DNA of 64,000 nt, taken from the IMG/VR virus record IMGVR_UViG_3300023174_000033, positions 1 through 64,000 of that record; one strand, given 5' to 3'. The notes beneath the pieces are model-generated. The model did no database searches, was not told where the DNA came from, and worked only from the letters and a program-made list of their open reading frames with translations. Below, in pieces: positions 7,306 to 60,070 of the stretch (the first letter of the stretch is position 1; each line of letters starts with the position of its first letter). The translations under genes were made by a program, and so were the position numbers.

Positions 7306-7764
7306 ATGAAAATAGATTTAAATAAACTAGTTGATATAAGGAATAAATCGGCCACCTATGAATTCGAAATCCTTGATAAAATGACTGCTGGGATTGTACT
7401 TACAGGAACTGAAATTAAATCTATTCGCAATCAAAAAGTAAATGTACAAGATAGTTTCTCCCAGTTTAAAGGTTCAGAATTATATCTAGTGAATTTACAC
7501 ATTGGAATTTATAAAGAAGGAACTTATAATAACCACATCCCAAAAAGAGAAAGAAAACTTCTACTTAAAAAATCAGAAATTAAAAAGTGGAAAGGAAAGA
7601 TGGAAGAGAAAGGATTAACCATTGTACTAACTAGATTGTTTATAAATGAAAGTGGAAGATGTAAAGTTGAAATTGCACTTTCAAGGGGCAAGAAGCTACA
7701 CGATAAAAGAGCGAGTATTAAAGAACGAGATCTTGATAGGGAAATAAGAAAGAATTTGGAATAA
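7306..7764 (+). CDS. smpB: SsrA (tmRNA)-binding protein
   Basis: NKSA.YEF, AGIVLTGTEIKSIR, RKLLLKK.EI and GKKLHDKR..IKERD motifs. Confidence 0.97.
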   Translation: MKIDLNKLVDIRNKSATYEFEILDKMTAGIVLTGTEIKSIRNQKVNVQDSFSQFKGSELYLVNLHIGIYKEGTYNNHIPKRERKLLLKKSEIKKWKGKMEEKGLTIVLTRLFINESGRCKVEIALSRGKKLHDKRASIKERDLDREIRKNLE

Positions 7765-7781: not shown

Positions 7782-8279
7782 TTATAGTTTTTCTATTATA
7801 TTAACTAACTTAGCATAATCCTGACTCATCAACCATTTGAGTCCAAAGTGTAAAGGTTGTGGTAAATTATCCAATTCAGTCCAAGTGAATTCCTTAGTTT
7901 CCCAGTTTAATTTAGGTGTAAATTCTTCATCTACTATCGCTAAGAAGTTATAGTATCTAAACGAATCTTTTTGAAATATAGATAGTGGTACCATTTCTAC
8001 CTTACCACTATATCCAGCTTCCTCTGTTAATTCTCTTTTGGCTGAAATTTGTGGATCTTCATCACTATCAATCGCACCCCCCCAAACACCCCAAGTGTTC
8101 GGCTCTAATACATATGATGATCGTAATGGTAAAAGAAATCTTTTTGTTACCCTACATAGGATTATACAACCAGCGCCTTTTTTACCCCAAAATCCAGTAT
8201 CAGATAAAGCCTTACGGTGGTCTTCATCACTTTCCTTCAAAAATTTTTCAAATGATTCAAATTTGAATAAATGTTTCAT
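7782..8279 (-). CDS. NUDIX hydrolase with N-terminal MKHLFKFESF tag
   Basis: Nudix box GGAIDSDEDPQISAKRELTEEAG. Confidence 0.9.
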   Translation of the reverse strand: MKHLFKFESFEKFLKESDEDHRKALSDTGFWGKKGAGCIILCRVTKRFLLPLRSSYVLEPNTWGVWGGAIDSDEDPQISAKRELTEEAGYSGKVEMVPLSIFQKDSFRYYNFLAIVDEEFTPKLNWETKEFTWTELDNLPQPLHFGLKWLMSQDYAKLVNIIEKL

Positions 8280-8944
8280 ATTATATTATTTTCTAAACAC
8301 CATTCATCCAAGACTTTTAAAGCCTCCTCCCTTGGTAAATCTCTTACCACTCTACCATTCTCCTTATAGAACTGTGCCCTCATTTGATTATCTATCCCAC
8401 GCTCAGTGAAATCTTCATCCTTTAGGACTGGTTCAGACTTATATGATCTAGGAATTCTAGGAACTTTAGTAAATAATCCCTCACTAGCTTTATCTTTTAA
8501 TAATTGCTCCAAACCTTTAAATGGGTTTTTATCACTTTCCTCACATATAAAATGTCCCATAGCTTTTGTATAATCAGTAGCCCTTGTATTGGGTGCAAAT
8601 ATAGAAACCACAAAACCAATACCACCTTGATCGAATGGTTTGATTAATATAATGTGATCAGTCTCCTCACATCGACAAATCAAAACCTTTAGAACATCTT
8701 TATCACTATATTCATATTGACGATCAAATTCAGCACTAAATGAAACATCACCTATAATAGATTTACACAACTCTTCTATCTTATTAAAAAATCCGTTTGA
8801 TTTCTTATCATCATCCCAAACGAGATACTTATCCCCCATTAACCAACTCTCCCTCCAAGTATTATATTGTTCCGCACTTATCTCTTCATAATAAGTTGAA
8901 AAGTAATCAGTATCAAAATCTTCAAATAATTTTAAGTGTTTCAT
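8276..8944 (-). CDS. Hypothetical protein, MKHLKLFE family
   Basis: N-terminal tag; C-terminal ~50 aa shared with 17280-17969. Confidence 0.7.
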   Translation of the reverse strand: MKHLKLFEDFDTDYFSTYYEEISAEQYNTWRESWLMGDKYLVWDDDKKSNGFFNKIEELCKSIIGDVSFSAEFDRQYEYSDKDVLKVLICRCEETDHIILIKPFDQGGIGFVVSIFAPNTRATDYTKAMGHFICEESDKNPFKGLEQLLKDKASEGLFTKVPRIPRSYKSEPVLKDEDFTERGIDNQMRAQFYKENGRVVRDLPREEALKVLDEWCLENNII

Positions 8945-8996
8945 ATTTTATATATTTATTTTTGGATTACAATTATATTATTGATATTTTTGTCTT

Positions 8997-9221
8997 ATGA
9001 CATACCAAGAAGCTTACGACCTAGCACTTAAATCAAAATGGATTGCAACACCCTGCTTTGTAGGGGAATCCTGTTGGTGTAATATAATCACACCAGAAGT
9101 CCCAATCTTTTATGGCGAAGAAGATAACGAAGAAGTCCAAATAGTTTCATCAGGCGCCATTAATAAACAAATAGCAGAGCATATAGTAAAAGTCCATAAC
9201 CAATCCCTTGAATCAAAATGA
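8997..9221 (+). CDS. Hypothetical protein (CFxGExCWC motif)
   Basis: ORF after TATTTTTG box at 8985-8992. Confidence 0.7.
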   Translation: MTYQEAYDLALKSKWIATPCFVGESCWCNIITPEVPIFYGEEDNEEVQIVSSGAINKQIAEHIVKVHNQSLESK

Positions 9222-9457
9222 TGAATGAATATTATAAACCCCTAATAGTTTTCCTCATAGGTGGTATCATAGGAATTTCTATTCTCATTTTAAAAACACC
9301 CAGTAAAAAATACCCAGTGACAGTTCAATGTTATTGGGAAACAAAAGGTTATCAATCATATCCCACTTTTGAGTGTGATTCTATTAAAGGTGATACTTGT
9401 TATAAAGATGGTAATGTGATTATAACAAAGAATATTATTAACGTTAGTTTTAATTAA
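9218..9457 (+). CDS. Hypothetical membrane-anchored protein
   Basis: N-terminal hydrophobic helix. Confidence 0.6.
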   Translation: MMNEYYKPLIVFLIGGIIGISILILKTPSKKYPVTVQCYWETKGYQSYPTFECDSIKGDTCYKDGNVIITKNIINVSFN

Positions 9458-9494
9458 ATTTGGTTTACAATTATTTTATCCTTACCTTTGTCTT

Positions 9495-9662
9495 ATGAAT
9501 AACACAAAAGTTGAAAGAGCAATCTACCTACAAAAAAAGGCGAACGACCAAATAGATACTTATGGTGAAGCATCCCATGATGTTGTAGATGAACTAATGG
9601 AAATTGTAGATTCCTTAAATGAAGGGGAACAATCACTTATGTTAGAACTTTATTACAAATAA
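9495..9662 (+). CDS. 55-aa hypothetical protein; its TAA stop forms the first TAAC core of the array
   Basis: MNNTKVERAIYLQKKANDQIDTYG…LYYK*, after TACCTTTG at 9483-9490; below the ORF-track cutoff. Confidence 0.7.
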   Translation: MNNTKVERAIYLQKKANDQIDTYGEASHDVVDELMEIVDSLNEGEQSLMLELYYK

Positions 9663-9748
9663 CGGTTGGGTGTATATGTAGGTTTTTAAATAAATACTCT
9701 AATATATACTATTGAACTAAATGAAAAACTTACATATACACCTTGTTA
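9660..9748. repeat. attC-like site 1 (class A)
   Basis: TAAC-GGTTG-GGTGTATATGTAGGTTTT … AAAACTTACATATACACC-TT-GTTA. Confidence 0.85.
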
Positions 9749-9806
9749 TGTGTTAGTAAAAAAAATAAAAACTTATTATGAAACAAAAATTATACAAATT
9801 AAAAAT

Positions 9807-10019
9807 ATGAAAATTAAAGACTTAAAAGATTGGTTGGATACACTAACAAAAGAACACGATGAATGCGAAATTGTGTTTAGAAAAATTGTTGGTAAAGATA
9901 ATAAGGATTATATGATTGCGAAGGATAATAGCATTGATGCTTGTGGAATAGACACAGACAATAATGAGGTTTATTTTTGTGATGAAACGACACACAACAT
10001 TATTGAGAAAAACTCATAA
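9807..10019 (+). CDS. Cassette 1 ORF, hypothetical
   Basis: ATG at 9807 (MKIKDLKDWL…KNS) after the conserved cassette leader. Confidence 0.7.
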   Translation: MKIKDLKDWLDTLTKEHDECEIVFRKIVGKDNKDYMIAKDNSIDACGIDTDNNEVYFCDETTHNIIEKNS

Positions 10020-10037
10020 TTTTTGTTTTATTACTTA

Positions 10038-10085
10038 TAACGTCCGATGATAAACAATCGTTTTAATGTTGTTTATCATTTGTTA
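10038..10085. repeat. attC-like site 2 (class B, 48 bp)
   Basis: TAAC-GTCCG-ATGATAAACAA-TCGTTTTAATG-TTGTTTATCAT-TT-GTTA. Confidence 0.85.
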
Positions 10086-10119
10086 GGTTTAGTATCAAAA
10101 ATTTTATACAAATTAAAAT

Positions 10120-10443
10120 ATGAAAGCAAGAATTAACGAGAATGAAACAAAAGAACTGAATCCAACAGAGATTGGAGAAAGGTTCATCAATGTAATGAAT
10201 AAATTACAAGAATTAGGTGTTTTTTATGGTGAAAACTATGGTGGTAAATACGAAGAAAAATATCCACATAGTTGTTATATGTTTAATATTAGATTGGATA
10301 GACATCGTTCTGGTTTTGAAAGTTTAATTGAAGATGGGTGTGGTGATAACACAGAAGAAGTTGAAGTTGCAAGAGAAGATACATCAGTTGAAGAATTATT
10401 GGTTCTTTTGGAAAAGACTTTCGATAAACTAAAAAACTCATAA
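10120..10443 (+). CDS. Cassette 2 ORF, hypothetical
   Basis: ORF between complementary cassette ends; ends in KNS*. Confidence 0.7.
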   Translation: MKARINENETKELNPTEIGERFINVMNKLQELGVFYGENYGGKYEEKYPHSCYMFNIRLDRHRSGFESLIEDGCGDNTEEVEVAREDTSVEELLVLLEKTFDKLKNS

Positions 10444-10537
10444 AATTTTTGATATTGAATATAACTAGCGGCTACACGCAGGTTTATTGTGTATATACAA
10501 CAAATTAAAAAACTCAAAACAATAATTTAATTGAACC

Positions 10538-10650
10538 TAACGGTTGGGTGTATGAGAAGGTTTTTTATTTGGAAATCTCGAAATTTATACCTACCTTTGT
10601 ATGAGTAGTGTGGCTTTGCACATACTTTCAACTTACAGATAAACTTTATA
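10538..10650. repeat. Degenerate attC-like site (class A left arm, decayed right arm) with an internal promoter
   Basis: TAACGGTTGGGTGTATGAGAAGGTTT is identical to the left arm at 12504. Right arm AACTTACAGATAAACTTTATAAAC lacks GTT. TTTG (10568) and TACCTTTG (10592) lie inside. Confidence 0.65.
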
Positions 10651-10663
10651 AACAGTTTTTACT

Positions 10664-10879
10664 ATGGAAGAATTTACACAACATGATTGGAATCACATGC
10701 ACGATTGTATATTACATGCAACTTGGAATACCACGAAGAAGAAATCTACAAGAGAAGAACTTGTGGAAATTTTCAATAAACTACCAGAAGACTTAAAAGA
10801 AGATGCTTACGAATGGGGTATGTCAGATACGTTGTGGAGAGATAAGTTTATTGAATGGTATGAGGAAAATTGTTTATAA
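10664..10879 (+). CDS. Cassette 3 ORF, hypothetical
   Basis: Stop codon overlaps the TAAC core at 10877. Confidence 0.7.
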   Translation: MEEFTQHDWNHMHDCILHATWNTTKKKSTREELVEIFNKLPEDLKEDAYEWGMSDTLWRDKFIEWYEENCL

Positions 10880-10955
10880 CGGTCGCAAATATGAGAAGTA
10901 AATCTTTTCATTAAAAATTAGGCAAAGTAAGATTTATTTCTTATATTTGTTGTTA
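10877..10955. repeat. attC-like site (class C, 79 bp)
   Basis: TAAC-GGTCG-CAAATATGAGAAGTAAATCTT … AAGATTTATTTCTTATATTTG-TT-GTTA. Confidence 0.85.
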
Positions 10956-10985
10956 TAAGTAGTAAAAACTAAAAAAATTATACAA

Positions 10986-11201
10986 ATGGAACAAAAACTC
11001 GAATTAAATTACAAGGAACAAATTGATTTTCTAACTTCAAAAAGAGATATAGAGTTGGAAAAATTGGATAATATGTTAAAAAGTAATTCAGATAGATTAA
11101 AAATAGAAAATCAATTTGATACACTCATGAAAGAACAAAATCAACTATCACTTACAATAGGTGCTAATAGAGTTTTTGTTAATAGTAGATATGGTAAATA
11201 A
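10986..11201 (+). CDS. Cassette 4 ORF a, coiled-coil-like hypothetical
   Basis: ORF inside the cassette. Confidence 0.65.
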   Translation: MEQKLELNYKEQIDFLTSKRDIELEKLDNMLKSNSDRLKIENQFDTLMKEQNQLSLTIGANRVFVNSRYGK

Positions 11202-11218
11202 TTTTAAAAATTAAACAA

Positions 11219-11440
11219 ATGAAAAGAACTAAATTAACAGATTTTATTTTGAAAAACTTACGATGGACTAGTATATTTTTGTGGAATCAAATATATTTTA
11301 ACAGATTAAGTAAAGCGTTAGAAGAATTTAAAAACAATTCAGATGTGGAAACTATTTCACACAAAAATAATGATGTAATTAAAAGTTTTTCAAAAGAAAA
11401 TTTAGGTGATAGTACTATATATAAAGTTGAGGTAGTTTAA
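11219..11440 (+). CDS. Cassette 4 ORF b, hypothetical
   Basis: Second ORF in the same cassette. Confidence 0.6.
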   Translation: MKRTKLTDFILKNLRWTSIFLWNQIYFNRLSKALEEFKNNSDVETISHKNNDVIKSFSKENLGDSTIYKVEVV

Positions 11441-11459
11441 TTTTAGTTTTTATTACTTA

Positions 11460-11538
11460 TAACTGTTGCAAATATGAGAAGTAAATCTTTTCATTAAAAA
11501 ATAAACAAAATAAGATTTATTTCTTATATTTGTTGTTA
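11460..11538. repeat. attC-like site (class C, 79 bp)
   Basis: TAAC-TGTTG-CAAATATGAGAAGTAAATCTT … AAGATTTATTTCTTATATTTG-TT-GTTA; near-identical to 10877-10955. Confidence 0.85.
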
Positions 11539-11552
11539 TATTAGTTAAATTA

Positions 11553-11801
11553 TTGTTTTACAGATTAAAAAAGAAAAAAGTGAAAGAACAAATTATTGAA
11601 ATTTTAGGAAAAAACCACACCACTCCAATACAATTTGATGAATTTAATGGTTTTTATGGACTATATACATATAAAAATGGTGTATATGTGTTTAAGGAAG
11701 GTGAAGATATTGATTATGATGATATTAATGATAGTGATAAAAATAAAATATTAAAAGTGGTTTTGTCTAAAAAATGGAAATTAAATAAATCTCTACAATA
11801 A
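11553..11801 (+). CDS. Cassette 5 ORF, hypothetical
   Basis: ORF filling the cassette; start codon uncertain (TTG or a later GTG). Confidence 0.6.
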   Translation: MFYRLKKKKVKEQIIEILGKNHTTPIQFDEFNGFYGLYTYKNGVYVFKEGEDIDYDDINDSDKNKILKVVLSKKWKLNKSLQ

Positions 11802-11820
11802 ACAATAATTTAATTGAATA

Positions 11821-11868
11821 TAACGTCTGATGATAAACAATCGTTTTAATGTTGTTTATCATTTGTTA
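11821..11868. repeat. attC-like site (class B, 48 bp)
   Basis: TAAC-GTCTG-ATGATAAACAA-TCGTTTTAATG-TTGTTTATCAT-TT-GTTA; 1 nt different from 10038-10085. Confidence 0.85.
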
Positions 11869-11914
11869 TAAGTATGTAAAACAAAAATTATACAAATTAA
11901 AAAAAAATAAAATT

Positions 11915-12148
11915 ATGAGTTGGAAATTAAACACAGAAGATGAAAATCCATTATGGAGACAATATATGGATGAACTTGAAAAAATGAATCCAGAGGAATC
12001 AAGAAAATGGGAGGTAGTAAGAGAATTACCAGTTGAATTACCATTTAAGACAACAACGACATCCAATTATTCAGAAGATGAATTTTTGGAAAAATTGAAA
12101 ACTGATGAGGACTTTAATAAGAGATGGGGTAAATTAAAAAACTCATAA
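11915..12148 (+). CDS. Cassette 6 ORF, hypothetical
   Basis: ATG at 11915 (MSWKLNTEDE…KLKNS) after the conserved leader. Confidence 0.7.
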   Translation: MSWKLNTEDENPLWRQYMDELEKMNPEESRKWEVVRELPVELPFKTTTTSNYSEDEFLEKLKTDEDFNKRWGKLKNS

Positions 12149-12166
12149 TTTTTGTTTTATTACTTA

Positions 12167-12214
12167 TAACGATTGCAAATATATTGTCGTTTTAATGCAA
12201 TATATTTGTTGTTA
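12167..12214. repeat. attC-like site (class C-type stem with class B loop, 48 bp)
   Basis: TAAC-GATTG-CAAATATATTG-TCGTTTTAATG-CAATATATTTG-TT-GTTA. Confidence 0.85.
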
Positions 12215-12252
12215 TAGGTAGTTTATTAATTTTCTAAAACGGATTAAAAGAT

Positions 12253-12495
12253 ATGACACACGAATACATAAATGAATTATTAGAAAGACAGGGTGAAAAT
12301 CCTGTTTTGTTAGATAGATGTGTATTAAACATCACTGATGGTAGAAGTATAATTTACACACTTTGTGGTGATACTGATTATGAACAACGAGAACTTGAAA
12401 TATGCTATGCTGATAAACATAGTGATGTTATTTGGAAAGGTATCGTTAAAACAAAACAGGAATTGGAAAAGGTAGTTTTAGAAAATTTAAAATAA
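12253..12495 (+). CDS. Cassette 7 ORF, hypothetical
   Basis: ORF between complementary ends. Confidence 0.7.
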   Translation: MTHEYINELLERQGENPVLLDRCVLNITDGRSIIYTLCGDTDYEQRELEICYADKHSDVIWKGIVKTKQELEKVVLENLK

Positions 12496-12503
12496 ATTAC
12501 ATA

Positions 12504-12591
12504 TAACGGTTGGGTGTATGAGAAGGTTTGCTTTGATGAACTTTCAAATTATCACCAATGCTGATAGCAAACTTTCTTATACACCTTGTTA
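12504..12591. repeat. attC-like site (class A, 88 bp)
   Basis: TAAC-GGTTG-GGTGTATGAGAAGGTTTGCT … AGCAAACTTTCTTATACACC-TT-GTTA. Confidence 0.85.
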
Positions 12592-12702: not shown

Positions 12703-13200
12703 ATGAGTGAAGATATACGCAAAATGATTGATAAAGTTAAGAAATTTAAACAATTTATTAGCGAAAGTAATACTACAAATTATATCAATTGGAGTGATTT
12801 ACCAATCCAAGTAAAAAATGACATAACTGAAAATTTGAGAGATAATATACGATATATTAAAGAAGAATATTGGAATAGTGAAGCGTTGAGAGATTCTATT
12901 GACGATTCTATTAATAAACCAATTTTTAAAATAGAATATAAAAATGTTGATGTTTTGTATAACGAACTTATACAAATTGGTTGGGGTATTAGTGAAGACA
13001 ATGTTAAAAGATTAATTTCTGCTCTAAAAAATGGTGCTGAACTTGACCCAATTATACTTGAAAACGGTAAATTTTTTGATGGTGGTCATAGATTGACTGC
13101 ATACAAAAAAATGAAAAAAGAATTAATACCTACAATTGATATTGGATTTTTGATGAATTTCGATTGGGAAAAATGGGACAACGGACAGGCTGATTTTTAA
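12703..13200 (+). CDS. Cassette 8 ORF, ParB/Srx-like domain protein
   Basis: LDPIILENGKFFDGGHRLTAY motif. Confidence 0.7.
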   Translation: MSEDIRKMIDKVKKFKQFISESNTTNYINWSDLPIQVKNDITENLRDNIRYIKEEYWNSEALRDSIDDSINKPIFKIEYKNVDVLYNELIQIGWGISEDNVKRLISALKNGAELDPIILENGKFFDGGHRLTAYKKMKKELIPTIDIGFLMNFDWEKWDNGQADF

Positions 13201-13247
13201 AAGTTTTTGAAAAAAAATGCTAAATAGAACGTATAATGTAATATTGG

Positions 13248-13280
13248 TTATAACTAACATATATCTACAATAACCTGTTT
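13248..13280. other. Candidate attI-like primary site at the integrase-proximal end of the array
   Basis: The last cassette ends in TAAC (13251-13254), followed by non-palindromic TAACATATATCTACAATAAC about 50 bp before the integrase start. Confidence 0.45.
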
Positions 13281-13305: not shown

Positions 13306-13814
13306 GTGAAAAAAACCAACTATTACGAAATTTGTAAAACAAAACTGCAATACCTAAACTACTCACCCAAAACCCAATCTACCTATTTACACTATGTAGA
13401 GCAATTCCTAAACGCAACCAAAATACCACCTACAAGGCTTACCTCACAAGATTTTCAATCCTATCTTGATAACTTTAATTTCACCTCAACATCCCAACAA
13501 AATCAAGTAATAAATTCAATCCGATTTCTATATAAGTTTGGACTGAATAAGAAATATGATAAGGTTTCTTTCAAAAGACCTAAATCAGAAAAAAAACTAC
13601 CTAAAGTAGTTGATTCCGATTTTATACTCAATAAACTTGACCAAATAGGTAATATCAAACACAAAACTATACTAACACTAACCTTTTCTGTGGGTCTTAG
13701 AGTATCTGAAATAACTAACCTTAAAATTGAAGATATTGACTCTAAACGAATGATAATCCATATCAAAAATGCGAAAGGTAGAAAAGATAGAATAGTCCCA
13801 CTTTCACAAAAAGT
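13306..13814 (+). pseudogene. Tyrosine recombinase (integron-integrase/XerD-like), N-terminal part
   Basis: NYSPKTQSTY…F, QNQVINSIRFLY, KKLPKV, GLRVSE..NLKIEDID and KGRKDRIVPL motifs; breaks off at the GIY-YIG gene. Confidence 0.9.
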
Positions 13815-14600
13815 CTATTTCAAATTATAATCTTCTAAATATCTAAAATTAGTATTATTTTTTATTTGTCCTAAAAGTTTAGCTTTTAAGGTTCTTACCT
13901 TTATTCCCATTGAATCGGCTGCTTCCTTTTTACTCGGAAAAATTTCTCCAGTTTCAATGTTTATAATTGGTCTTTTATTATGAGCTACTTTTCCTTTATT
14001 CGATTCACTTATTTTTTTCTTTGTTTCACCTGAATGTTTTTTACCCGACATTGGTTTATGATGAGCATGATTTTTACTAATTTTTTTTCTTATATCATCT
14101 GTAAGTTTTACACCCTTTCTATTTGAATTGCCCTTAGTGAAATTATTACCTAATAACCAACCATTTTCTAAATATGATTCCAATTGATTTACACATACTA
14201 GAATACACTCATTATCTTTATAAATCCATTTTTTACCAAATTGTGGATTTTTTTCATTACTGAAATCAGCTCTATTCATTTTCATTAATAACTTAGTATA
14301 ATCAGACATTATATAACTATCACCACCCTCCCTCAAATTTAATCCAATGTCACTATTAAAGCTATTAAACTCTGCTATGTATTTTTTCTCTAAAAAATTT
14401 AATTCATCTCTTTCACATTCTACAAGAATAGAAAATTCATGATTTTCCCAACCATATTTTTTTATAGAATTATATAAAAAAGTTTGTTCTATGCATTTTT
14501 CCGATTTATATGATCTAATTCTTCTCTTTATATCAATTGATTGTCCTATATAAATTCTACCAGATGGAGAAACTATTTTATATATACCACATATTTTCAT
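13815..14600 (-). CDS. GIY-YIG homing endonuclease with NUMOD3-like repeats
   Basis: GIYKIVSPSGRIYIGQS…R…Y, LE..YI..FNS…GLNL..GG, GKKHSGETKKKIS and C-terminal IINIETGEIFPS..EAA motifs. Confidence 0.92.
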   Translation of the reverse strand: MKICGIYKIVSPSGRIYIGQSIDIKRRIRSYKSEKCIEQTFLYNSIKKYGWENHEFSILVECERDELNFLEKKYIAEFNSFNSDIGLNLREGGDSYIMSDYTKLLMKMNRADFSNEKNPQFGKKWIYKDNECILVCVNQLESYLENGWLLGNNFTKGNSNRKGVKLTDDIRKKISKNHAHHKPMSGKKHSGETKKKISESNKGKVAHNKRPIINIETGEIFPSKKEAADSMGIKVRTLKAKLLGQIKNNTNFRYLEDYNLK

Positions 14601-14633: not shown

Positions 14634-14735
14634 ATGATAATCCAAAAAATAGCAGGTCACTCAAATGTTAAAACAACTGAAATATATACACACGTCTCAA
14701 ATCAATTACTAAGTAAAGTAAATCTACCCATATGA
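14634..14735 (+). pseudogene. C-terminal remnant of the tyrosine recombinase (catalytic Tyr box)
   Basis: Translates as MIIQKIAGHSNVKTTEIYTHVSNQLLSKVNLPI*, matching IQxLxGHxxxxTTxIYTH. Confidence 0.9.
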
Positions 14736-15076
14736 AAGTAATTATAGCAGGCTCAAGAAACTTTAATGACTACAACTTACTAAAATCAAGTTGTGATAAC
14801 CTACTTACACAATTCACTAATATAGAAATAGTTAGTGGAACCGCCAGAGGTGCAGATAAACTTGGTGAAAAATATGCAAGGGAGAAAGGTTATGATATAA
14901 AACAATTCCCAGCTAATTGGAATTTGGGTAAAAGTGCTGGATATATTAGAAATGATGAAATGGCACAGTATGCAGATATGTTAATTGCGTTCTGGGATGG
15001 AACAAGTAGAGGAACTAAACATATGATTGATTTGGCTAATAAAAGAAGTTTAAAGGTTGAAATTGTAAGATATTAA
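14732..15076 (+). CDS. SLOG/YspA-like (DUF2493) protein
   Basis: KVIIAGSR, IVSGTARGAD, AGYIRN..M and FWDG.SRGT motifs. Confidence 0.85.
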   Translation: MKVIIAGSRNFNDYNLLKSSCDNLLTQFTNIEIVSGTARGADKLGEKYAREKGYDIKQFPANWNLGKSAGYIRNDEMAQYADMLIAFWDGTSRGTKHMIDLANKRSLKVEIVRY

Positions 15077-15104: not shown

Positions 15105-15479
15105 ATGGAACACTTATGTGATTTTTTGGATTTTGTAGAACTTCTTGAAGAATCTAATGACCCAAAAGTAGGAACTGGTAAAAAACCTAAAGGTTCCAGT
15201 AGAAGACTTTACACAGATGAAAACCCGAATGATACAGTATCAGTTAAGTTCAGAACTAAAGAAGATGTTCAACAAACAATCAATAGCCAATCATTCAAAT
15301 CTAAATCACATAAAAGACAATCACAAATACTAAACCTTATTGAACAAAGGTTAAGAGTGGCTCATAAAAGAGCAAAAGATACAGATACAAAAGAAAGATT
15401 GAAAAGAGCTCACGATTATATAAAATCAAAATGTGAAGCATCTAAAAAGAAAACCCAAAGGTTAAAAGAAATTGGGTAA
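15105..15479 (+). CDS. Basic hypothetical phage protein
   Basis: ORF after a TATATA element; DPKVGTGKKPKGS.RRLYTDENP segment. Confidence 0.7.
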   Translation: MEHLCDFLDFVELLEESNDPKVGTGKKPKGSSRRLYTDENPNDTVSVKFRTKEDVQQTINSQSFKSKSHKRQSQILNLIEQRLRVAHKRAKDTDTKERLKRAHDYIKSKCEASKKKTQRLKEIG

Positions 15480-15561
15480 GTTTTATCGGGGTAAATAAAC
15501 AATTGTCTGAGCATAAAGTAAAATTACATAACCAATCCCTTGAATCAAAATAACTAATTAT

Positions 15562-16518
15562 ATGAAAATATTCACCGGTTCAAATAACAATCAATTAAGT
15601 CAAAAAATATCAAATAGCTTACAATCTATTTCAAATGGGTATTATACTGACTCATTCGATAGTCTTAAAATAGAGAAGTTTTCAGATGGTGAAATACTTC
15701 CACTCTTTACCGAATCTGTTAGAAATCAAGATGTTTATTTTATACAAAGTTTAGTAAGCAGTGATGCAATAATGGAAACCTTACTCGTATCAGATGCCGC
15801 TAAAAGAGCAGGTTGCTTATCTTTTAATCTAATATCACCTTATATGGGATACTCAAGACAAGATAAAACAGATCACCTAAGATCTTCTATTGGCTCTAAA
15901 GTTATCGCTGATATATTTGAAAAAATAGGAGTTAATAATTTATTCACTATCGACCTACACGCATCCTCTATTCAAGGATTCTATAACATACCAGTTATAC
16001 ATTTAAATGGTAATAAAATATTTATTGATTACTTAAAAGATCTAAACATTGATGATATTTGCATCGTAGCACCAGATCAAGGTGCGGTTAAAAGAGCCTC
16101 GGATTACTGTAAAGCTTTCCCAGATTCTACATTCGCAATGATTAATAAAAAAAGAACTAAACCAAATGAAGTTCATTCAATGGAGCTAGTTGGTGATGTT
16201 AAAGATAAAAACGTTGTTATCGTTGATGATATAGCAGATACCCTTGGAACTTTGAAAAAAGCATCAGAACTTGTTAAATCACACGGGGCCAAATCAGTTA
16301 GAGCAATTTGTACTCACGGAATCCTTTCCTCAAGTGCTATCAAAAATCTTGAAGAATCCCCTTTAATAGAATTATTGGTTTCAGATAGTATAGAATCTGT
16401 TATTGATAAAGCAACTTGGAGTAATAAGTTAAGAGTCGTAACTTGCGCTGATATCCTATCCAAAACAGTTATAGCAGTCCACCATAAGAAAAGTGTACAC
16501 GAAATAAACATAATCTAA
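15562..16518 (+). CDS. prs: Ribose-phosphate pyrophosphokinase
   Basis: FSDGEI, ESVR, YSRQDK, DLHA..IQGFY, PDQG, VDDIADT.GT and THG motifs. Confidence 0.95.
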   Translation: MKIFTGSNNNQLSQKISNSLQSISNGYYTDSFDSLKIEKFSDGEILPLFTESVRNQDVYFIQSLVSSDAIMETLLVSDAAKRAGCLSFNLISPYMGYSRQDKTDHLRSSIGSKVIADIFEKIGVNNLFTIDLHASSIQGFYNIPVIHLNGNKIFIDYLKDLNIDDICIVAPDQGAVKRASDYCKAFPDSTFAMINKKRTKPNEVHSMELVGDVKDKNVVIVDDIADTLGTLKKASELVKSHGAKSVRAICTHGILSSSAIKNLEESPLIELLVSDSIESVIDKATWSNKLRVVTCADILSKTVIAVHHKKSVHEINII

Positions 16519-16573
16519 TCATTAATCTTTCATCTAAAAAGAAAACCCAAAGATTAAAAGAAGGTAAGTAATT

Positions 16574-17278
16574 TTAAAATAGTTTTTCCTTGTAAGACTT
16601 ATGACATTGTAATTCTAACCCATTAGAGATACGTCTTACAGTTGCAATGTGCTTACCCCCATCAAAAAAATGATAAAACATTAAACCAATATCTCTAATA
16701 CAAGGATACAATCTGAATAACTCTAAAAACTTCTCATAATCTATTTCTTTAGACTCAGAATCCAATTCCCTTAAAGGTGATTTAAGTAAACTCAACATCT
16801 CCTCATTATCATTGTAAGGAGTTGTCTTTTCAGCCCACTCTTCAAACCCATCCCATCCATCTATAATACAATATAAAGTAACCATTGCAATAGATTCACT
16901 TTCAACCCTTGTTGGAAATACTACAGGAACATTTACCTGTATAACAAAATAATCATCATTATAAAAATTAATACGAAAATCAGGCTCTATTCCAACTTCA
17001 GTCTTATAATATAATGTAAGTACATTTGGCACTAGTTTTGAAGAAACACCATTAAACTCAATACCAGTAACTTCTGGTTTTAAGTAACCATTTAAAATCT
17101 TTAATATCCTTTGCTTATCACCTTCAGTTATTTTGTGTCTACCTTTTATTTCTTGTAAATCATCCATCATATAATCATACTCATCCTCATCTAAATCCAT
17201 ATAGGTTTTATTCTGCCTATTGAATATATCCCATAGTTCAGATTCGTTTAATTGATTAAATGATTTTAAGTGTTTCAT
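16574..17278 (-). CDS. Hypothetical protein, MKHLK family
   Basis: MKHLKSFNQLNE tag; DDYF…DGWDG motif resembling the 39.4-44 kb family. Confidence 0.7.
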   Translation of the reverse strand: MKHLKSFNQLNESELWDIFNRQNKTYMDLDEDEYDYMMDDLQEIKGRHKITEGDKQRILKILNGYLKPEVTGIEFNGVSSKLVPNVLTLYYKTEVGIEPDFRINFYNDDYFVIQVNVPVVFPTRVESESIAMVTLYCIIDGWDGFEEWAEKTTPYNDNEEMLSLLKSPLRELDSESKEIDYEKFLELFRLYPCIRDIGLMFYHFFDGGKHIATVRRISNGLELQCHKSYKEKLF

Positions 17279-17279
17279 A

Positions 17280-17969
17280 TTATTTATTATTCATATCCCA
17301 TTTATCCAAAACCTTTAAAGCTTCTTCTCTGGGTAAATCCCCTACCTCCTTACCATGTTCCTTGTAAAACTTAGCCTTCATTTGATTGTCCATTCCACGC
17401 TCGATAAAATGTTCATCCTTTAAGATTGGTTCAGACTTATAAGCTTTTGGTTCCTTTTTAATCTTCTTATGTAAACAAGGCGATTCAGTCCAAACGTGTA
17501 ATGTAACACCTTCTTCCTTAGACATCTGAATCAATTCTTCATAAGACAAGGATCCAACCATACCACTATCAATTAACTGCTGTTGATACTCAACTATTGG
17601 TAGATAATCCCAATTCTTAAAGAAAAGTTGCCCAAGTCCACCACTGCCTATTTGTTTTGTAAACCCAAATCTAGCACCTTCTTGTGGTATTATCTCAAAT
17701 GCATTTCCAAACTTATCATAATTATTATCAGCCGGTCTGAAAAACATATGTACAGATTTAGTAGGGTCTTGTATTCCAAACTTAGTTGACCAGTTAGTCA
17801 TGAATTTTCTATAATTTTCATCATACCACATATCCCCTAAATGAACCTTTCTTTGACTAGGGTCATCTATGTATTCATCCTTATCTGCCCTTGAACCTCT
17901 TATCAAGGTTTTGTTGAATACATCTGGGAAATTAGATTGGAAGTTTTCGAATAGTTTAATATGTTTCAT
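17280..17969 (-). CDS. Hypothetical protein, MKHIKLFE family
   Basis: N-terminal tag; C-terminal module shared with 8276-8944. Confidence 0.7.
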   Translation of the reverse strand: MKHIKLFENFQSNFPDVFNKTLIRGSRADKDEYIDDPSQRKVHLGDMWYDENYRKFMTNWSTKFGIQDPTKSVHMFFRPADNNYDKFGNAFEIIPQEGARFGFTKQIGSGGLGQLFFKNWDYLPIVEYQQQLIDSGMVGSLSYEELIQMSKEEGVTLHVWTESPCLHKKIKKEPKAYKSEPILKDEHFIERGMDNQMKAKFYKEHGKEVGDLPREEALKVLDKWDMNNK

Positions 17970-31856: not shown

Positions 31857-32732
31857 ATGTCTCACTTCTTACAAACAGATTGGAATAAATTCCACCTTAT
31901 TGATTTAATTGAAGGTATGGAAAAAATCCAATCCGAATCAGTTGATATCATTATCATTGATCCACCCTATAATATCGGCAAAGACTTTGGAGAATGCAAA
32001 GATAATCTTTCTTTAGATGAATATCTCACTTGGTGTGATAAGTGGATTACTCAATCCATAAGAATCCTTAAACCAACCGGTTCAATATTCATCTATGGAT
32101 TCAGTGAAATATTAGCACATATATCAGTTAGACTTAAACTTGATAAAAGATGGTTGATTTGGCACTATACAAATAAAACAGTTCCAAGTTATAACGGTTG
32201 GCAAAGAAGCCACGAAAGCATAATCTATGCTTGGAAAACTAAACCACAATTCAATAGAGATGTGGTTAGAGTTCCTTATACAGATACATTCCTAAAAAAC
32301 GCAGCCGGTAAAAAAAGAAAAGGAAGCGAAACCGCTAGGTTCGGTAAAAGTAGTGATACAATCTATCAAGCCCACGAAGGAGGTGCACTACCCAGGGATG
32401 TATTCACCGATATATCAACTTTAGCCGGTGGTTCTGGTAGAGAAAGATACTTTCTTTATGATGGTGAGGTTTATCCAGGAAAAGATATAAGTAATTTTGA
32501 TGTAAGTAAGTGTTTGAAACATCCCACACAAAAACCAAGTAAACTAACCGAAAGATTAATCCTTTCCGCTAAACCCAATTCAAATTGCAAAGTAGTAATT
32601 CCTTTTGGTGGTTCCGGTACAGAAGGTGTCGTGTGTAAAAGACTTGGAGTTGATTTCATTGGGTTTGATATTAATCAAGATTATATCAAATTGGCTAATG
32701 GAGCTTTAGAAAAATATTTAGATATATTTTGA
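31857..32732 (+). CDS. Amino (N6A/N4C) DNA methyltransferase, beta class
   Basis: DPPY, then HPTQKP and PFGGSGT. Confidence 0.93.
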   Translation: MSHFLQTDWNKFHLIDLIEGMEKIQSESVDIIIIDPPYNIGKDFGECKDNLSLDEYLTWCDKWITQSIRILKPTGSIFIYGFSEILAHISVRLKLDKRWLIWHYTNKTVPSYNGWQRSHESIIYAWKTKPQFNRDVVRVPYTDTFLKNAAGKKRKGSETARFGKSSDTIYQAHEGGALPRDVFTDISTLAGGSGRERYFLYDGEVYPGKDISNFDVSKCLKHPTQKPSKLTERLILSAKPNSNCKVVIPFGGSGTEGVVCKRLGVDFIGFDINQDYIKLANGALEKYLDIF

Positions 32733-32740
32733 TTAAAAGA

Positions 32741-32770
32741 AAAAACCCAGTTTAAAGACTGGGTTTTTTT
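32741..32770. terminator. Bidirectional intrinsic terminator
   Basis: AAAAACCCAGT…ACTGGGTTTTTTT between convergent genes. Confidence 0.8.
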
Positions 32771-32774
32771 ATTA

Positions 32775-33410
32775 TTAGAACTTATTTCTAATATCTTTTT
32801 GAGGATTATAACTACCAATACCAGCAATATCATCATCAGAATTATATCCAAACATTTTCATAATCAAGTCAAACATAAAAAGTGCAGCCCAACCTGCAGC
32901 TGCAAGTTCAATTGTTGTCATTAAACTAACATCCACAGCTAGAGATGTATTCATGGGTAATTTACCTAAAACGTGTAATGCATATGTAAGTATGATAGCT
33001 AAACCCATACCAGCTGACCCAGCAACATTAATCCCTAGAGCTTGTTTTATCCTACCAATAATCTTAACAGCCATGTTTTCATTTTCTTTAAAGTTTTCTG
33101 AAATGGTCTCTAATCCAAGTGCTTTAGTTAATTTCATAACATTCTCCTTGTTCATTTCTGGATTAACAGTACCAAATGTTTTCTTCATAAACTGCGCAAT
33201 CTTTCCAGCATCTTTATCAGATATGCCCTTGAATGAATCTTTGACTTCTTCAATCTTATTTCCTATTTTATCCACAAGATCACTATATAAGTCAGATATA
33301 CCAGCAAAAACATCCTTATAAGCATCACCAGCATGTTTAACAACATCTACTGGTAACATACCCATTTCTACTTCTTCATTAAACTTATTAAAGTTTCGTA
33401 TGTGTTTCAT
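32775..33410 (-). CDS. Membrane protein; paralog of 18634-19236
   Basis: Shared KFNEEVEMGxLPxDVVKH, FGT, KEN and AVKI motifs. Confidence 0.7.
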   Translation of the reverse strand: MKHIRNFNKFNEEVEMGMLPVDVVKHAGDAYKDVFAGISDLYSDLVDKIGNKIEEVKDSFKGISDKDAGKIAQFMKKTFGTVNPEMNKENVMKLTKALGLETISENFKENENMAVKIIGRIKQALGINVAGSAGMGLAIILTYALHVLGKLPMNTSLAVDVSLMTTIELAAAGWAALFMFDLIMKMFGYNSDDDIAGIGSYNPQKDIRNKF

Positions 33411-46111: not shown

Positions 46112-46183
46112 GCATCCATAGTGAAATTGGTATCACGACGGTCTCCAAAACCGTTATTCTACGTTCGAATCGTAGTGGGTGTG
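46112..46183 (+). tRNA. tRNA-Trp (CCA); 3' CCA not encoded
   Basis: Acceptor GCATCCA/TGGGTGT, D stem GTGA/TCAC, anticodon arm ACGGT-CTCCAAA-ACCGT, T arm CTACG-TTCGAAT-CGTAG; followed by CAA. Confidence 0.93.
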
Positions 46184-46297
46184 CAAATATGAACGAAATA
46201 TTAGATTACATAGACAAAATGACAGACCAACATATTGAATTTGGTCACGAAATAAATTTGGAATCCTCAACCCAAATGATTACCTTTGTATTCACTT

Positions 46298-58900: not shown

Positions 58901-60070
58901 TCAATTTTTTGATAGAAAATTATCAACCTCAATCCTTCTTATTTCCCTACCTAAATCACCTTTTTTAAAACCCTTTCTAATCAAATCTTGCACATTCGTC
59001 ACTGGCATCCAATTAGAAAACTTTACTATATTTTTACTTTTTAAAATATTTCCCCATTCTAAAATTGTAGAATTATCAATCTTTGATTGTAGTTTTTCTT
59101 TATAATAATCATAAACTAAATTTAAATCAAATTTTGATATTTTTAAGAGAAATACAACCTTTTTAGCAATTTCAATTTCAATCTTATATACTTGAACCAT
59201 TTTATTTTCAAGGTCAAATGGATTCTCAAATAAAAACAAATTTGATAGAATTAAAACAAAATTATCACTATTGATAAGTTTTGTATTTATTTTTGAATTT
59301 GGGAATAATTCTACCCACATATCATATTCTGTGATTAGACTTAAAAAGAAATTAAAATCTTCAGATTGTTTCCAAGCTTTAGTAAATTCACTCCAAATCC
59401 TTTCTTGGGATATTCTTTTCTCTTTATTTGTATCTAAATCAATTGTTGTTAATTTGTTTTTATTTTTGATTGCTTGTTTGGTAGACTCGTCTAATTCCGA
59501 TTTATATCTTGAAGCAAATCTAAAAGCTCTTAATATTCTCAAGGAATCTTCATCAAATCTCTCTGATGCGTTTCCAACCATCTTTATTATGTTTTTATTC
59601 AAATCTTCTTTACCTCCGGTTAAATCTACAATTTCTTTTGTATCTAAATCGTAGAATAAAGCATTGAATGTTATGTCTCTTCTTTTTACATCATCTTCAA
59701 TTGTCACTCCCAATTTAACTTGTGGGTTTCTACCCTTTGAAATATCTTGTCTGAATGTGGTTATTTCAATTCCATCTGGTTGATCATCGGTATATACAAC
59801 TATAGTTCCATAAGCTTTTCCTTGTATATTAGTATTGTATCTATCTTGTAAAAAACTTAATACTTCATCAGGCAGGGCGTTTGTGGTTAAATCAAAATCT
59901 TTTGGATCATCTCCTTTAAGGAAATCTCTAACAGCACCACCGACTATATAAAGTTTTTTACCTTGTTGATTGAATATTTTATGTATATCTTTTATAGATT
60001 TTGGTATAATTGACCATAGATCCATTTGACTTGATTCAACCAAGAAGTTTTTAAAATTTAAAATACGCAT
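58901..60070 (-). CDS. cca: CCA-adding tRNA nucleotidyltransferase (class II)
   Basis: VGGAVRD, DFDLTT, EITTFR, D..RRD.TFNA, RFDEDSLRILRAFRF and SQERI..E motifs. Confidence 0.9.
   Translation of the reverse strand: MRILNFKNFLVESSQMDLWSIIPKSIKDIHKIFNQQGKKLYIVGGAVRDFLKGDDPKDFDLTTNALPDEVLSFLQDRYNTNIQGKAYGTIVVYTDDQPDGIEITTFRQDISKGRNPQVKLGVTIEDDVKRRDITFNALFYDLDTKEIVDLTGGKEDLNKNIIKMVGNASERFDEDSLRILRAFRFASRYKSELDESTKQAIKNKNKLTTIDLDTNKEKRISQERIWSEFTKAWKQSEDFNFFLSLITEYDMWVELFPNSKINTKLINSDNFVLILSNLFLFENPFDLENKMVQVYKIEIEIAKKVVFLLKISKFDLNLVYDYYKEKLQSKIDNSTILEWGNILKSKNIVKFSNWMPVTNVQDLIRKGFKKGDLGREIRRIEVDNFLSKN

Follow-up and report, generated by a model that had tools for sequence, protein, structure and literature searches.

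The seven hairpins at positions 9660–12591 of the window (the whole 64-kb stretch of phage DNA that was analysed) are best explained, with good confidence, as the cassette recombination sites (attC analogues) of an integron-like gene-capture platform in a huge phage that probably infects Bacteroidota. This giant phage and many of its relatives appear to run the platform with a simpler, Xer-type recombinase. In 80 related phage loci, 300 distinct sites of the same kind form arrays directly upstream of, and co-oriented with, a gene for a 266-aa XerA-like tyrosine recombinase. The platform is not an integron in the strict sense, because the recombinase lacks the IntI-specific insertion, the sites lack extrahelical bases, and the cassette ORFs carry the hairpin at their 5′ end and point towards the recombinase. 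We found no prior description of such a system.

Hairpin sites in the window

We searched the window for TAAC...GTTA pairs enclosing a stem and found exactly seven strong sites, all on the + strand: 9660–9748 (89 nt), 10038–10085 (48 nt), 10877–10955 (79 nt), 11460–11538 (79 nt), 11821–11868 (48 nt), 12167–12214 (48 nt), and 12504–12591 (88 nt). All seven read TAAC-N4G-stem-loop-stem-TT-GTTA. The left spacers are GGTTG, GTCCG, GGTCG, TGTTG, GTCTG, GATTG, and GGTTG, and the right spacer is TT. The stem arms fall into three classes, and site 12167 combines a class C arm with the class B loop TCGTTTTAATG. The observation of these sites in the first-pass annotation is therefore confirmed. The bare end pattern alone is not rare, with 10 matches against about 3.8 expected, but only these seven have long stems and cluster within 2.9 kb. 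Their fold z-scores are −3.4 to −5.9, and a covariance model found all seven plus one decayed site and nothing else in the window.

Three points of the earlier description were refined. First, the internal loop had been given as 5 versus 2 nt, but if G·T pairs are allowed, it is 4/1, or a pure 3-nt 5′ bulge flanked by two G·T pairs. Second, the arm mismatches had been given as G (left) against T (right), but class B and hybrid sites also have a T (left)·G (right) pair. The rule is therefore wobble on the + strand, and every stem mismatch in the window is a G·T or T·G wobble on that strand. Third, the geometry had been called invariant, but across the 300 related sites it is 5/2 in 167, 5/1 in 70, 6/2 in 14, 6/3 in 12, and 4/1 in 11. 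The long spacer is almost always 5′, and the 5′ excess of 3–4 nt is conserved.

Covariation and strand bias

We examined the stem structure by RNAalifold on 76 sites, which gave a TAACG/TGTTA lower stem, a 3–4 nt 5′ bulge, and a 20-bp upper stem, with 17 of 25 pairs showing compensatory double changes. Cells were 97.4% paired, against 76.2% when partners were shuffled and 37–55% when they were slid, and double-change cells numbered 368 against 111 (0/500 shuffles). The sites in these statistics are related by descent, so that the counts overstate the number of independent events. With strand-neutral scoring, the stems of the related sites hold 380 G·T, 37 A·C, and 52 other non-Watson-Crick pairs. 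G·T was kept at alignment columns 30/83 in 69/76 sites and at columns 12/97 in 74/76 sites. Folding of both strands with DNA parameters had been proposed beforehand as a check, and the + strand folded better in 7/7 window sites and in 260/271 family sites (mean −2.76 kcal/mol). The covariance model scored the + strand 46–70 bits above the − strand. These results support hairpins under selection on the + strand.

The interpretation in the first-pass annotation, namely a + strand hairpin recognized by shape with a 3-nt bulge in place of the extrahelical bases of canonical attC sites, is partly supported. Selection on the + strand and attC-like behaviour are supported. Recognition by shape is only partly supported, because several sequence positions are fixed: TAAC/GTTA, the G after TAAC, T-A/A-T/T-A at stem positions 5–7, and G·T wobbles kept at stem positions 8 and 13 while their neighbours covary. 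The bulge might replace the extrahelical bases, which fits the fact that the recombinase lacks the IntI-specific insertion that contacts those bases in IntI. However, the bulge lies on the arm that carries the AAC, whereas canonical extrahelical bases lie on the opposite arm (PMC5027507). The annotation did not foresee that the recombinase is Xer-like and not IntI or that each hairpin travels with the ORF downstream of it, and a one-strand G:T bias is already a known property of canonical attC bottom strands (1.24 vs 0.39 per site, PMC5027507).

We considered whether the hairpins work only in RNA, as intercistronic processing sites, stabilizers, or terminators of a polycistronic transcript, with an incidental position next to the recombinase. 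All ORFs and hairpins of the array are on the + strand, the wobble bias is what an RNA helix would show, and a conserved A/T-rich motif follows several hairpins just before the start codon. However, no T-run tail follows any site, a terminator scan hit none of them, and no Rfam family matched. An RNA role also does not explain the invariant TAAC/GTTA, or the cassette junctions exactly at AAC, the conserved attI-like box, and the one-sided linkage to the recombinase described below. This reading is very unlikely, although an additional RNA role alongside the DNA role cannot be excluded, because the hairpins lie on the coding strand.

Organization of the array

All features of the array are on the + strand. 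Site 1 (9660–9748) has a class A arm (GGTGTAT...), and its TAAC overlaps the stop codon of the ORF at 9495–9662. It marks the outermost cassette boundary, and the covariance model scored it 85.5 bits on the + strand against 37.2 on the − strand. It is followed by a cassette ORF of 70 aa (9807–10019, no known family), site 2 (10038–10085, class B arm ATGATAAACAA, 34.9 bits), and a cassette ORF of 107 aa (10120–10443, no known family). An extra TAAC junction (10462–10465) comes after a typical cassette 3′ tail and is followed by a 76-nt stretch with no ORF and no hairpin, which we infer to be possibly a vestigial cassette. The decayed site (10538–10601, 24–28 bits) has an intact left half, TAAC-GGTTG-GGTGTATGAGAAGG, but its right arm is truncated and GTTA has become TGTA. 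The extra junction and the decayed site were both recovered as repeat families. The next cassette ORF (10664–10879, 71 aa) has a weak match to phrog_10191, of unknown function.

Site 3 (10877–10955, class C arm CAAATATGAGAAG, 64 bits) has G·T wobbles at stem positions 8 and 13 and precedes two ORFs in one cassette (10986–11201 and 11219–11440, no known family). Site 4 (11460–11538, class C, 48.1 bits) is the only one of the seven with T as the first spacer base. It is followed by a 73-aa cassette ORF with a GTG start (11580–11801; an alternative TTG start lies at 11553), site 5 (11821–11868, class B), and a 77-aa cassette ORF (11915–12148; the automatic ORF call starts at 11849). Site 6 (12167–12214) is the hybrid of a class C arm and the class B loop and precedes an 80-aa cassette ORF (12253–12495). 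Site 7 (12504–12591, class A, 104 bits) is the last, and matches to other loci start exactly at its TAAC and run on into the downstream ORF. This ORF, of the cassette next to the attI-like box (12703–13200, 165 aa), has no family, and a relative sits in a cassette of L022, one of the related loci. Across the related loci, the cassette pool holds 334 distinct small ORF families with a median of 83 aa, almost all without a Pfam match.

Recombinase and attI-like box

The attI-like box of the window (13237–13275, +) reads ...GGTTATAAC↓TAACATATATCTACAATAACC, where ↓ marks the junction, which follows 13254, 51 nt before the recombinase start. The family consensus TAAC↓TATTATATATA(A/C)ACA lies 42–52 nt before the start codon in nearly all loci, and its right half is conserved in about 60 loci whereas its left half varies. 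The N-terminal fragment of the XerA-like recombinase (13306–13830, +) holds the SAM-like domain plus catalytic R and K. A GIY-YIG/NUMOD homing-endonuclease gene (13815–14600, −) replaces recombinase codons about 175–233, including HxxR, and a 33-aa C-terminal fragment (14634–14735, +) holds GHS...TTEIYTHV, including the catalytic Y. The recombinase is therefore a pseudogene here, and the array is probably frozen unless another copy acts in trans.

We determined the position of the sites relative to the recombinase gene in the related loci. Of 45 loci with at least 3 kb of upstream flank, 41 have sites within 3 kb upstream (176 sites), whereas none of 66 loci has any within 3 kb downstream, and reverse orientation is almost never seen. 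Arrays without a nearby recombinase also exist, for example in locus L001 and the second arrays of loci L023 and L075.

All catalytic residues are present in intact homologues, which form a clade of their own beside IntI. The best sequence and structure relatives are XerA proteins (4a8e, 6e-39), although the score on the NCBIfam XerA model is below its cut-off (196.7 against 220). In regards to a canonical integron that happens to sit in a phage, the AAC/GTT ends, the imperfect palindromes of variable length, the attI next to the recombinase gene, and the G:T strand bias fit, and the N-terminal fragment scored 92 bits on the integron-integrase model TIGR02249. However, the intact 266-aa homologues scored 163.7 against a cut-off of 265, aligned to VchIntIA in two pieces that skip about 48 residues, and lack both IntI hallmark insertions that genuine IntI sequences carry in the same alignment. 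The stems have no extrahelical bases, and the cassette ORFs face attI, which has never been observed in integrons according to the attC literature (PMC5027507). This reading fails on defining features and is highly improbable.

Cassette mobility in related phages

Near-identical phages differ by whole cassettes whose junctions fall exactly after the 5′ AAC. Three related loci (L027, L028, and L033) carry the same cassettes in a different order, and the break falls exactly after TAAC, once against a hairpin and once against attI. Of 16 site-proximal ends of matches at 95% identity or better, 14 lie at the 5′ TAAC, and loci L014 and L015 show the same left break when compared. The cultured Polaribacter phages Freya_1, _5, _8, and _10 have flanks that are 99.8–100% identical, and the genomes differ by 4.9 kb (12 ORFs), 3.2 kb, and one 876-bp cassette. 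Every junction is AAC↓, including AAC↓ACCCCTATAAC, which lies 43 nt before the integrase gene. Mobility is shown in relatives with 40–80% identical recombinases and not in the array of the window, whose own cassettes are not shared at the nucleotide level with any of the loci retrieved.

We also considered PeSL-like regulatory cassettes, a stem-loop plus promoter as in the hyperplastic regions of T4-type phages, shuffled by homologous recombination between repeats with no dedicated recombinase. The setting is similar, with small ORFs of unknown function separated by repeated stem-loops in a large phage and a repeated motif downstream of the stem-loop. However, breaks occur between different site classes and between a site and attI, where only 4–5 nt are shared, promoter-like matches are not enriched (33 found against 33.9 expected), and co-location with one recombinase clade is strict. 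We regard this reading as very improbable.

Another possibility is that the sites are recombined as ordinary duplex DNA, Xer/dif-like, with a core formed by the TAAC end plus adjacent bases and a palindrome that only helps cruciform extrusion or binding. The recombinase is closest to XerA, which acts on duplex dif sites, it lacks the IntI insertion, and the extended left flank (...CATAAC) resembles the inner end of dif arms. The junctions at AAC fit either model, and junction mapping cannot separate single-strand exchange from double-strand exchange at a core site. However, the sequence to the right of the spacer varies and covaries with a partner 40–120 nt away, and the strand-specific wobbles are conserved as wobbles. 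The inverted GTTA end is invariant, yet it is essentially never a junction (0 left ends and 2 ambiguous right ends). In duplex form, the gap between the TAAC arm and the conserved TAT would be 9–10 bp, longer than the 6–8 bp usual for tyrosine recombinases, whereas in the folded form the uncut arm has 7 nt there. The duplex reading is unlikely.

Comparison with known systems

As in integrons, a tyrosine recombinase gene sits with an attI directly at its 5′ side, followed by an array of small, highly diverse cassettes, each with one imperfect palindrome of variable length and sequence in which only AAC...GTT is invariant. The junction is at the AAC on the 5′ side of the better-folding strand, which is the recombinase sense strand, G:T mispairs are enriched on that strand (about 1.3 per site, against the 1.24 reported for attC bottom strands, PMC5027507), and there is an unpaired region between the R box and the rest of the stem. 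Beyond the recombinase and the absence of extrahelical bases, the asymmetry here is a 3–4 nt excess next to the AAC on the same arm, the stem contains a conserved T-A/A-T/T-A block and fixed wobble positions, and the cassette ORFs lie on the folding strand, follow their hairpin, and point towards attI and the recombinase. The hosts are phages of Bacteroidota and some Bacteroidota genomes.

In CTX-phi type integration, reportedly (Val et al. 2005), XerC/XerD, without any IntI insertion, act on a hairpin of phage ssDNA with an unpaired, bulged central region, one strand is exchanged, and replication resolves the product, which shows that the proposed chemistry is possible for Xer-like enzymes. 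That system has one site per phage, uses host-encoded recombinases, and integrates a whole genome at chromosomal dif, without a cassette array or an attI next to a recombinase gene. In the pdif modules of Acinetobacter plasmids, Xer sites also bound small exchangeable gene modules, but dif and pdif sites are 28-bp duplex sites with two 11-bp arms, not hairpins of 48–140 nt with covarying stems, and use chromosomal XerC/D. Clusters of attC-type sites, with cassettes that include DNA methyltransferases, have been reported in virulent phages, including one Polaribacter phage (Qi et al. 2023, PMC9892861). Those are canonical attC sites or IntI found with IntegronFinder/HattCI in 21 phages, mostly clusters without an integrase, and the paper mentions neither a Xer-like recombinase nor Freya or Cellulophaga phages. 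PeSL (promoter-early stem-loop) cassettes of T4-type phages likewise separate small accessory ORFs in a plastic region of large phage genomes and are reported as proposed drivers of modular shuffling (Arbiol et al. 2010), but they are thought to act through homologous recombination and transcription signals, whereas here the junctions are site-specific at AAC and a dedicated recombinase and attI are present.

Proposed mechanism

In our model, the platform is an array of cassettes, an attI-like box, and a tyrosine recombinase gene, all on one strand. In + strand coordinates, a cassette runs from the base after one TAAC to the next TAAC and therefore consists of spacer, hairpin and GTTA, a short leader, one to three small ORFs, and a 3′ tail ending in TAAC. 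The + strand would fold, and TAAC would pair with GTTA to make an R box. A 5-versus-2 nt central region would leave 3–4 extra bases on the arm that carries the AAC, the first four stem pairs would be free to covary, and the conserved T-A/A-T/T-A pairs and fixed G·T wobbles would act as an L box. The XerA-like recombinase would cut at or within the 5′ AAC and exchange that strand with another site (excision) or with the attI box (insertion), and resolution would probably occur by replication, as in integrons. The wobbles and the bulge would make the − strand a poor hairpin and so fix the orientation. Our analysis demonstrates the site structure and its covariation, the strand bias, the linkage to the recombinase, the attI box, and the junctions exactly at AAC, whereas the single-stranded substrate, the exact bond cut, and the resolution step are inferred from sequence without experiment. 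The recombinase lacks the I2 helix and IntI-specific region, which published work treats as the innovation that let IntI recombine folded ssDNA (PMC4792948, PMC7790495), and this counts against the model. In this view, the hairpins belong to an integron-like gene-shuffling device that the phage and many relatives appear to run with a simpler, Xer-type recombinase, so that this way of capturing genes is not confined to classical bacterial integrons.

Genomic context of the window

The window had a G+C content of 30% and densely packed small genes. The genes with recognizable products encoded SmpB (7306-7764), orotidine-5'-phosphate decarboxylase (pyrF; 1190-1954), ribose-phosphate diphosphokinase (PRPP synthetase, prs; 15562-16518), a CCA-adding or poly(A) polymerase-type enzyme (58901-60070, - strand), a DUF285 protein, a DNA methylase, and tRNA-Trp (46112-46184), the only tRNA found. 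The DNA matched metagenomic huge-phage genomes of 460-640 kb. The recombinase fragment was 99% identical to IMG/VR contig IMGVR_UViG_3300023174_000033, on which the match lies at the same coordinate as in the window. A repeated 48-nt element (8953-9000 and 9451-9498) ended in the Bacteroidota -7 motif TAnnTTTG just before an ATG and is probably a Bacteroidota-type promoter, which hints at the host. We therefore treated the window as the first 64 kb of a huge phage (IMGVR_UViG_3300023174_000033, 464,605 bp) that probably infects Bacteroidota. Giant-virus "hairpin rule" polyadenylation signals were considered because of the AT-rich genome and were rejected on the basis of the matches to huge-phage genomes and IMG/VR contigs and of the Bacteroidota-type promoter motifs. 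A marginal Rfam match to the cyanobacterial sRNA Yfr10 (32727-32792, - strand; 45.9 bits, just above the 43-bit threshold) suggested a Prochlorococcus island, but the gene content did not support this reading; the match is unexpected in this genome and possibly spurious.

Direct repeats of 65 nt (9162-9226 and 15494-15558, 85% identical) bracketed the whole module, which comprises small ORFs, the array of sites, the recombinase, a YspA/SLOG-like gene (14732-15076), and the ORF at 15105-15479; this looks like the footprint of a 6.3-kb insertion or exchange. Direct repeats of 45 nt (15439-15483 and 16531-16575, 87% identical) bracketed the ribose-phosphate diphosphokinase gene, as if that gene had also been inserted as a unit. 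Two paralogous genes of unknown function on the - strand (8276-8944 and 17280-17969), sharing a 167-nt repeat at 77% identity and a 30-nt repeat at 90% identity, flanked the whole + strand block between them.

Structure and strand bias of the sites

We searched the window for TAAC and GTTA enclosing a stem and found seven strong sites, all on the + strand and all between 9660 and 12591. The first-pass annotation had described their spacers, their arm classes, their lengths, and the hybrid nature of the site at 12167, and this observation was confirmed in each of these respects. The bare end pattern is not rare by itself (10 matches against about 3.8 expected), but only these seven matches have stems of 13-22 pairs. 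When DNA parameters were used, every site folded better as the + strand, by 0.7 to 4.4 kcal/mol. If G.T pairs are allowed, the + strand forms TATAAC-G over T-GTTATA, followed by a 3-nt bulge and by an upper stem that opens with G.T. An eighth, decayed site was located at 10538-10601.

In related loci, we identified 300 distinct sites under scoring that treats G.T and A.C alike. Their geometries were 5/2 (167 sites), 5/1 (70 sites), 6/2, 6/3, and 4/1, so that an unpaired central spacer is present but asymmetric, and the reverse orientation was almost absent. The stem mispairs comprised 380 G.T, 37 A.C, and 52 others, and the + strand was more stable in 260 of 271 sites. In an alignment of 76 sites of 85-92 nt, TAAC and GTTA were invariant (76/76) and 17 of 25 pairs showed double changes. 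The aligned cells were 97.4% paired, against 76% when partners were shuffled and 37-55% when they were slid. The first four stem pairs varied freely, positions 5-7 were T-A, A-T, and T-A, and G.T was retained at stem positions 8 and 13 while the neighbouring pairs covaried. The fixed wobbles, which would be C.A mismatches on the other strand, look selected as wobbles.

In regards to the R boxes, the window sites read (A/T)(A/T)ATAAC and GTTA(T/G).., with A rather than Y at the third position of the RYYYAAC/GTTRRRY consensus, whereas some relatives fitted that consensus perfectly (for example GCCTAAC...GTTAGGT); pairing of the flanks decayed beyond -1/+1. The upper stems were continuous for about 20 bp without bulges. 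The sites thus lack the extrahelical bases of the L box, and the only unpaired excess (3-4 nt) lies beside the AAC, on the same arm, not on the opposite arm as in attC (PMC5027507).

We examined whether the hairpins are intrinsic terminators or known RNA elements. None of the sites was called as a terminator, the stems are followed by TTGTTA(T/G) and not by a T run, and no Rfam family matched the sites. Intrinsic terminators were therefore rejected, although an RNA role in addition to a DNA role remains possible.

The recombinase gene and its linkage to the sites

Just downstream of the array, on the same strand, lies a tyrosine recombinase gene in two pieces (13306-13830 and 14634-14735), which are separated by a GIY-YIG/NUMOD homing-endonuclease gene on the other strand (13815-14600, - strand). 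About 59 recombinase codons, including the HxxR catalytic motif, are missing, and the gene is dead here. We rejected a group I intron carrying the homing-endonuclease gene, because these codons are missing rather than interrupted. The gene is intact in the other loci retrieved, except on the window's own contig; in 79 other IMG/VR loci it encodes about 266 aa.

In those loci the same kind of site formed arrays of up to 16 copies directly upstream of the recombinase gene and on its strand. Of the 45 loci with enough flank, 41 had sites within 3 kb upstream, whereas none of 66 loci had any within 3 kb downstream. A purely RNA role does not explain this one-sided linkage. Arrays of the same sites also occurred with no recombinase gene within reach of the retrieved flank in three loci, L001 (LR756500.1; 7465-11919), L023 (18247-20350), and L075 (8947-11000), and are analogous to integron CALINs. 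Furthermore, the recombinase and upstream sites occurred in contigs assigned to Bacteroidota genomes, namely Flavobacterium urumqiense CGMCC 1.9230 (locus L084, 7458-8786), which is an isolate, and a Bacteroidales MAG (locus L088, 418-8756); these may be prophages or chromosomal platforms.

The recombinase was closest to XerA (4a8e, 6e-39). The XerA equivalog model NF040815 was the best match, but its score of 196.7 bits was below the cut-off of 220. The sites also differ from the single 28-bp duplex site, with two 11-bp arms and a 6-8 bp centre, of Xer/dif dimer resolution, because they form arrays of up to 16 hairpins of 48-140 nt. The intact homologues aligned to VchIntIA (2a3v) in two stretches that skip about 48 residues, and they scored 163.7 on TIGR02249 against a cut-off of 265. 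In an alignment with genuine integron integrases (up to 1e-136 on TIGR02249), which carry the ALARKYP..WQYVFP and DPRSG..RHH insertions, the homologues lacked both of these IntI hallmarks. They formed a separate, well-supported clade together with 265-268-aa proteins from Bacteroidota genomes, several of which have the same sites upstream. The field defines IntI by the specific region near patch III (the I2 helix; the intI_Cterm profile of IntegronFinder) (PMC4889954). These results indicate that the recombinase is not an IntI in this sense.

Cassette junctions and the attI-like box

We compared three related loci (L027, L028, and L033) that have 97-100% identical backbones but carry cassettes in a different order. 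One cassette ended ...GTGTATAAC in all three loci; it was followed by a hairpin in L033 and by the sequence just before the recombinase gene in L027 and L028. At a second junction, the same tail was followed by two different hairpin classes. The break is therefore right after the 5' (T)AAC of the + strand, within a resolution limited to the shared 3-5 nt, and each hairpin belongs to the ORF downstream of it. An all-against-all blastn comparison at relaxed identity gave too few and too blurred endpoints, but a strict megablast comparison was informative: among matches of at least 95% identity, 14 of 16 site-proximal ends lay at that TAAC. The comparison of two further loci, L014 and L015, added another left break there. 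The seventh site of the window showed the same behaviour, with matches that start at its TAAC and continue into the downstream ORF. When the window cassettes were compared with all loci, however, only the sites themselves and the leader after the seventh site were shared, and this array itself yielded no evidence of mobility.

A box TAAC^TATTATATATA(A/C)ACA (^ marks the junction) was located 42-52 nt before the start codon of the recombinase gene in nearly all loci and at 13237-13275 in the window. Its left half is variable and cassette-derived, its right half is conserved, and it is used as a junction. The box therefore occupies the position of an attI site between the recombinase gene and the first cassette. 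A purely RNA role explains neither the junctions nor the attI-like box. Recombination of duplex DNA at a core site fits the junctions, but it does not fit the covarying distant partner, the conserved wobbles, or the unused GTTA end. Shuffling of PeSL-type regulatory cassettes by homologous exchange fails, because the junctions occur between unlike sites that share only 4-5 nt. PeSL cassettes comprise a stem-loop followed by a sigma-70-type early promoter and are exchanged by homologous recombination within the repeat; here promoter-like matches were not in excess (33 against 33.9 expected).

The cassette ORFs lie on the recombinase strand and read towards attI, an orientation said never to be seen in integrons (PMC5027507), in which the ORFs read away from attI/Pc and carry the attC at their 3' end. 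Three unrelated cassette ORFs ended in the same AAAAACTCATAA, followed by the same tail of about 20 nt up to TAAC (10008-10041, 10433-10465, and 12137-12170); the conserved part of a cassette end therefore extends about 30 nt upstream of the site. The motif ATTATACAAATTAAAA was located between the hairpin and the start codon in three cassettes (9789-9804, 10103-10118, and 11887-11902; 5 matches with up to 2 mismatches against 1.4 expected) and may be a cassette-borne promoter or translation leader. The arrays contained 334 distinct ORF families with a median length of 83 aa. Of 90 sampled, only MT-A70, DUF7448, YopX, ART-PolyVal/Arr-ms, and a dual-specificity phosphatase matched Pfam, and the window's own cassette ORFs gave no informative match.

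Cassette arrays in cultured phages

Relatives of the recombinase (36-43% identity) are annotated "integrase" in Cellulophaga phage Ingeline and in Polaribacter phages Freya and Leef. Ten Freya isolates range from 43,978 to 48,920 bp, and this range appears to be due to the number of cassettes in front of the integrase gene. Freya_10 has 12 extra small ORFs exactly between ...ACAAC and ACCCCTATAAC, 43 nt before the integrase gene, and its flanks are 100% and 99.9% identical to Freya_1. Freya_5 lacks 3.2 kb of this array and Freya_8 lacks one 876-bp cassette, and in both cases the deletion runs from the end of one AAC to the end of another. The Freya sites have the same layout (AAC, 4-5 nt, stem, 1-3 nt, GTT) and + strand wobbles. 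The paper describing these phages reads the integrase as a sign of a temperate lifestyle and mentions no integron or hairpin (PMC8776804).

Interpretation and significance

These results indicate that the array is an integron-like platform, of a kind for which our literature searches found no description. It shares with integrons the array of imperfect palindromes ending in AAC...GTT, the unpaired central spacer, the recombination point at the AAC on the 5' side of the better-folding strand, and an attI-like box, and it differs from them in the absence of the IntI-specific region and of extrahelical bases and in the orientation of the cassette ORFs. The first-pass annotation had proposed that selection acts on a + strand hairpin recognised by shape, in which a 3-nt bulge replaces the extrahelical bases of attC; this interpretation was right in direction but only partly supported. 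The site structure, the covariation, the strand bias, the linkage, and the position of the junctions were observed directly in the sequences compared, whereas recombination of a single-stranded substrate, the exact bond cut, and the role of the bulge are inferred. The absence of extrahelical bases goes together with the absence of the protein region that binds them, which is coherent but is likewise an inference.

A broader reading, which we consider about as likely as not, is that a second lineage of integron-type gene-capture machines exists. In this view, a minimal Xer-like recombinase without the IntI I2 domain would recombine folded single-stranded hairpin sites, and strand choice would be encoded by the 3-4 nt bulge beside the cleavage site and by the fixed G.T wobbles, not by extrahelical bases. 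The system would be widespread in phages of Bacteroidota, from 44-kb cultured siphoviruses to phages over 450 kb, and in some Bacteroidota genomes, and its cassettes would carry their own leader and face the recombinase. If so, hairpin-site cassette recombination either predates the IntI insertion or arose twice.

Integrons are defined by IntI and its special domain, which is held to be the innovation that allows recombination of folded single-stranded sites. A cassette platform run by a recombinase without that domain would change this view and give a natural comparison for how strand choice can be encoded, a question that the Freya isolates and their Polaribacter host make directly testable. 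It would also show that IntegronFinder-type searches, which require the IntI-specific region, miss a whole class of arrays. The "integrase" of cultured Freya and related phages, which was taken as a sign of a temperate lifestyle (PMC8776804), may instead be a cassette recombinase. Furthermore, the platform would explain how large and small flavobacterial phages swap their many small accessory genes, of which only a few have family matches (a methyltransferase, ADP-ribosyltransferases, and a phosphatase).
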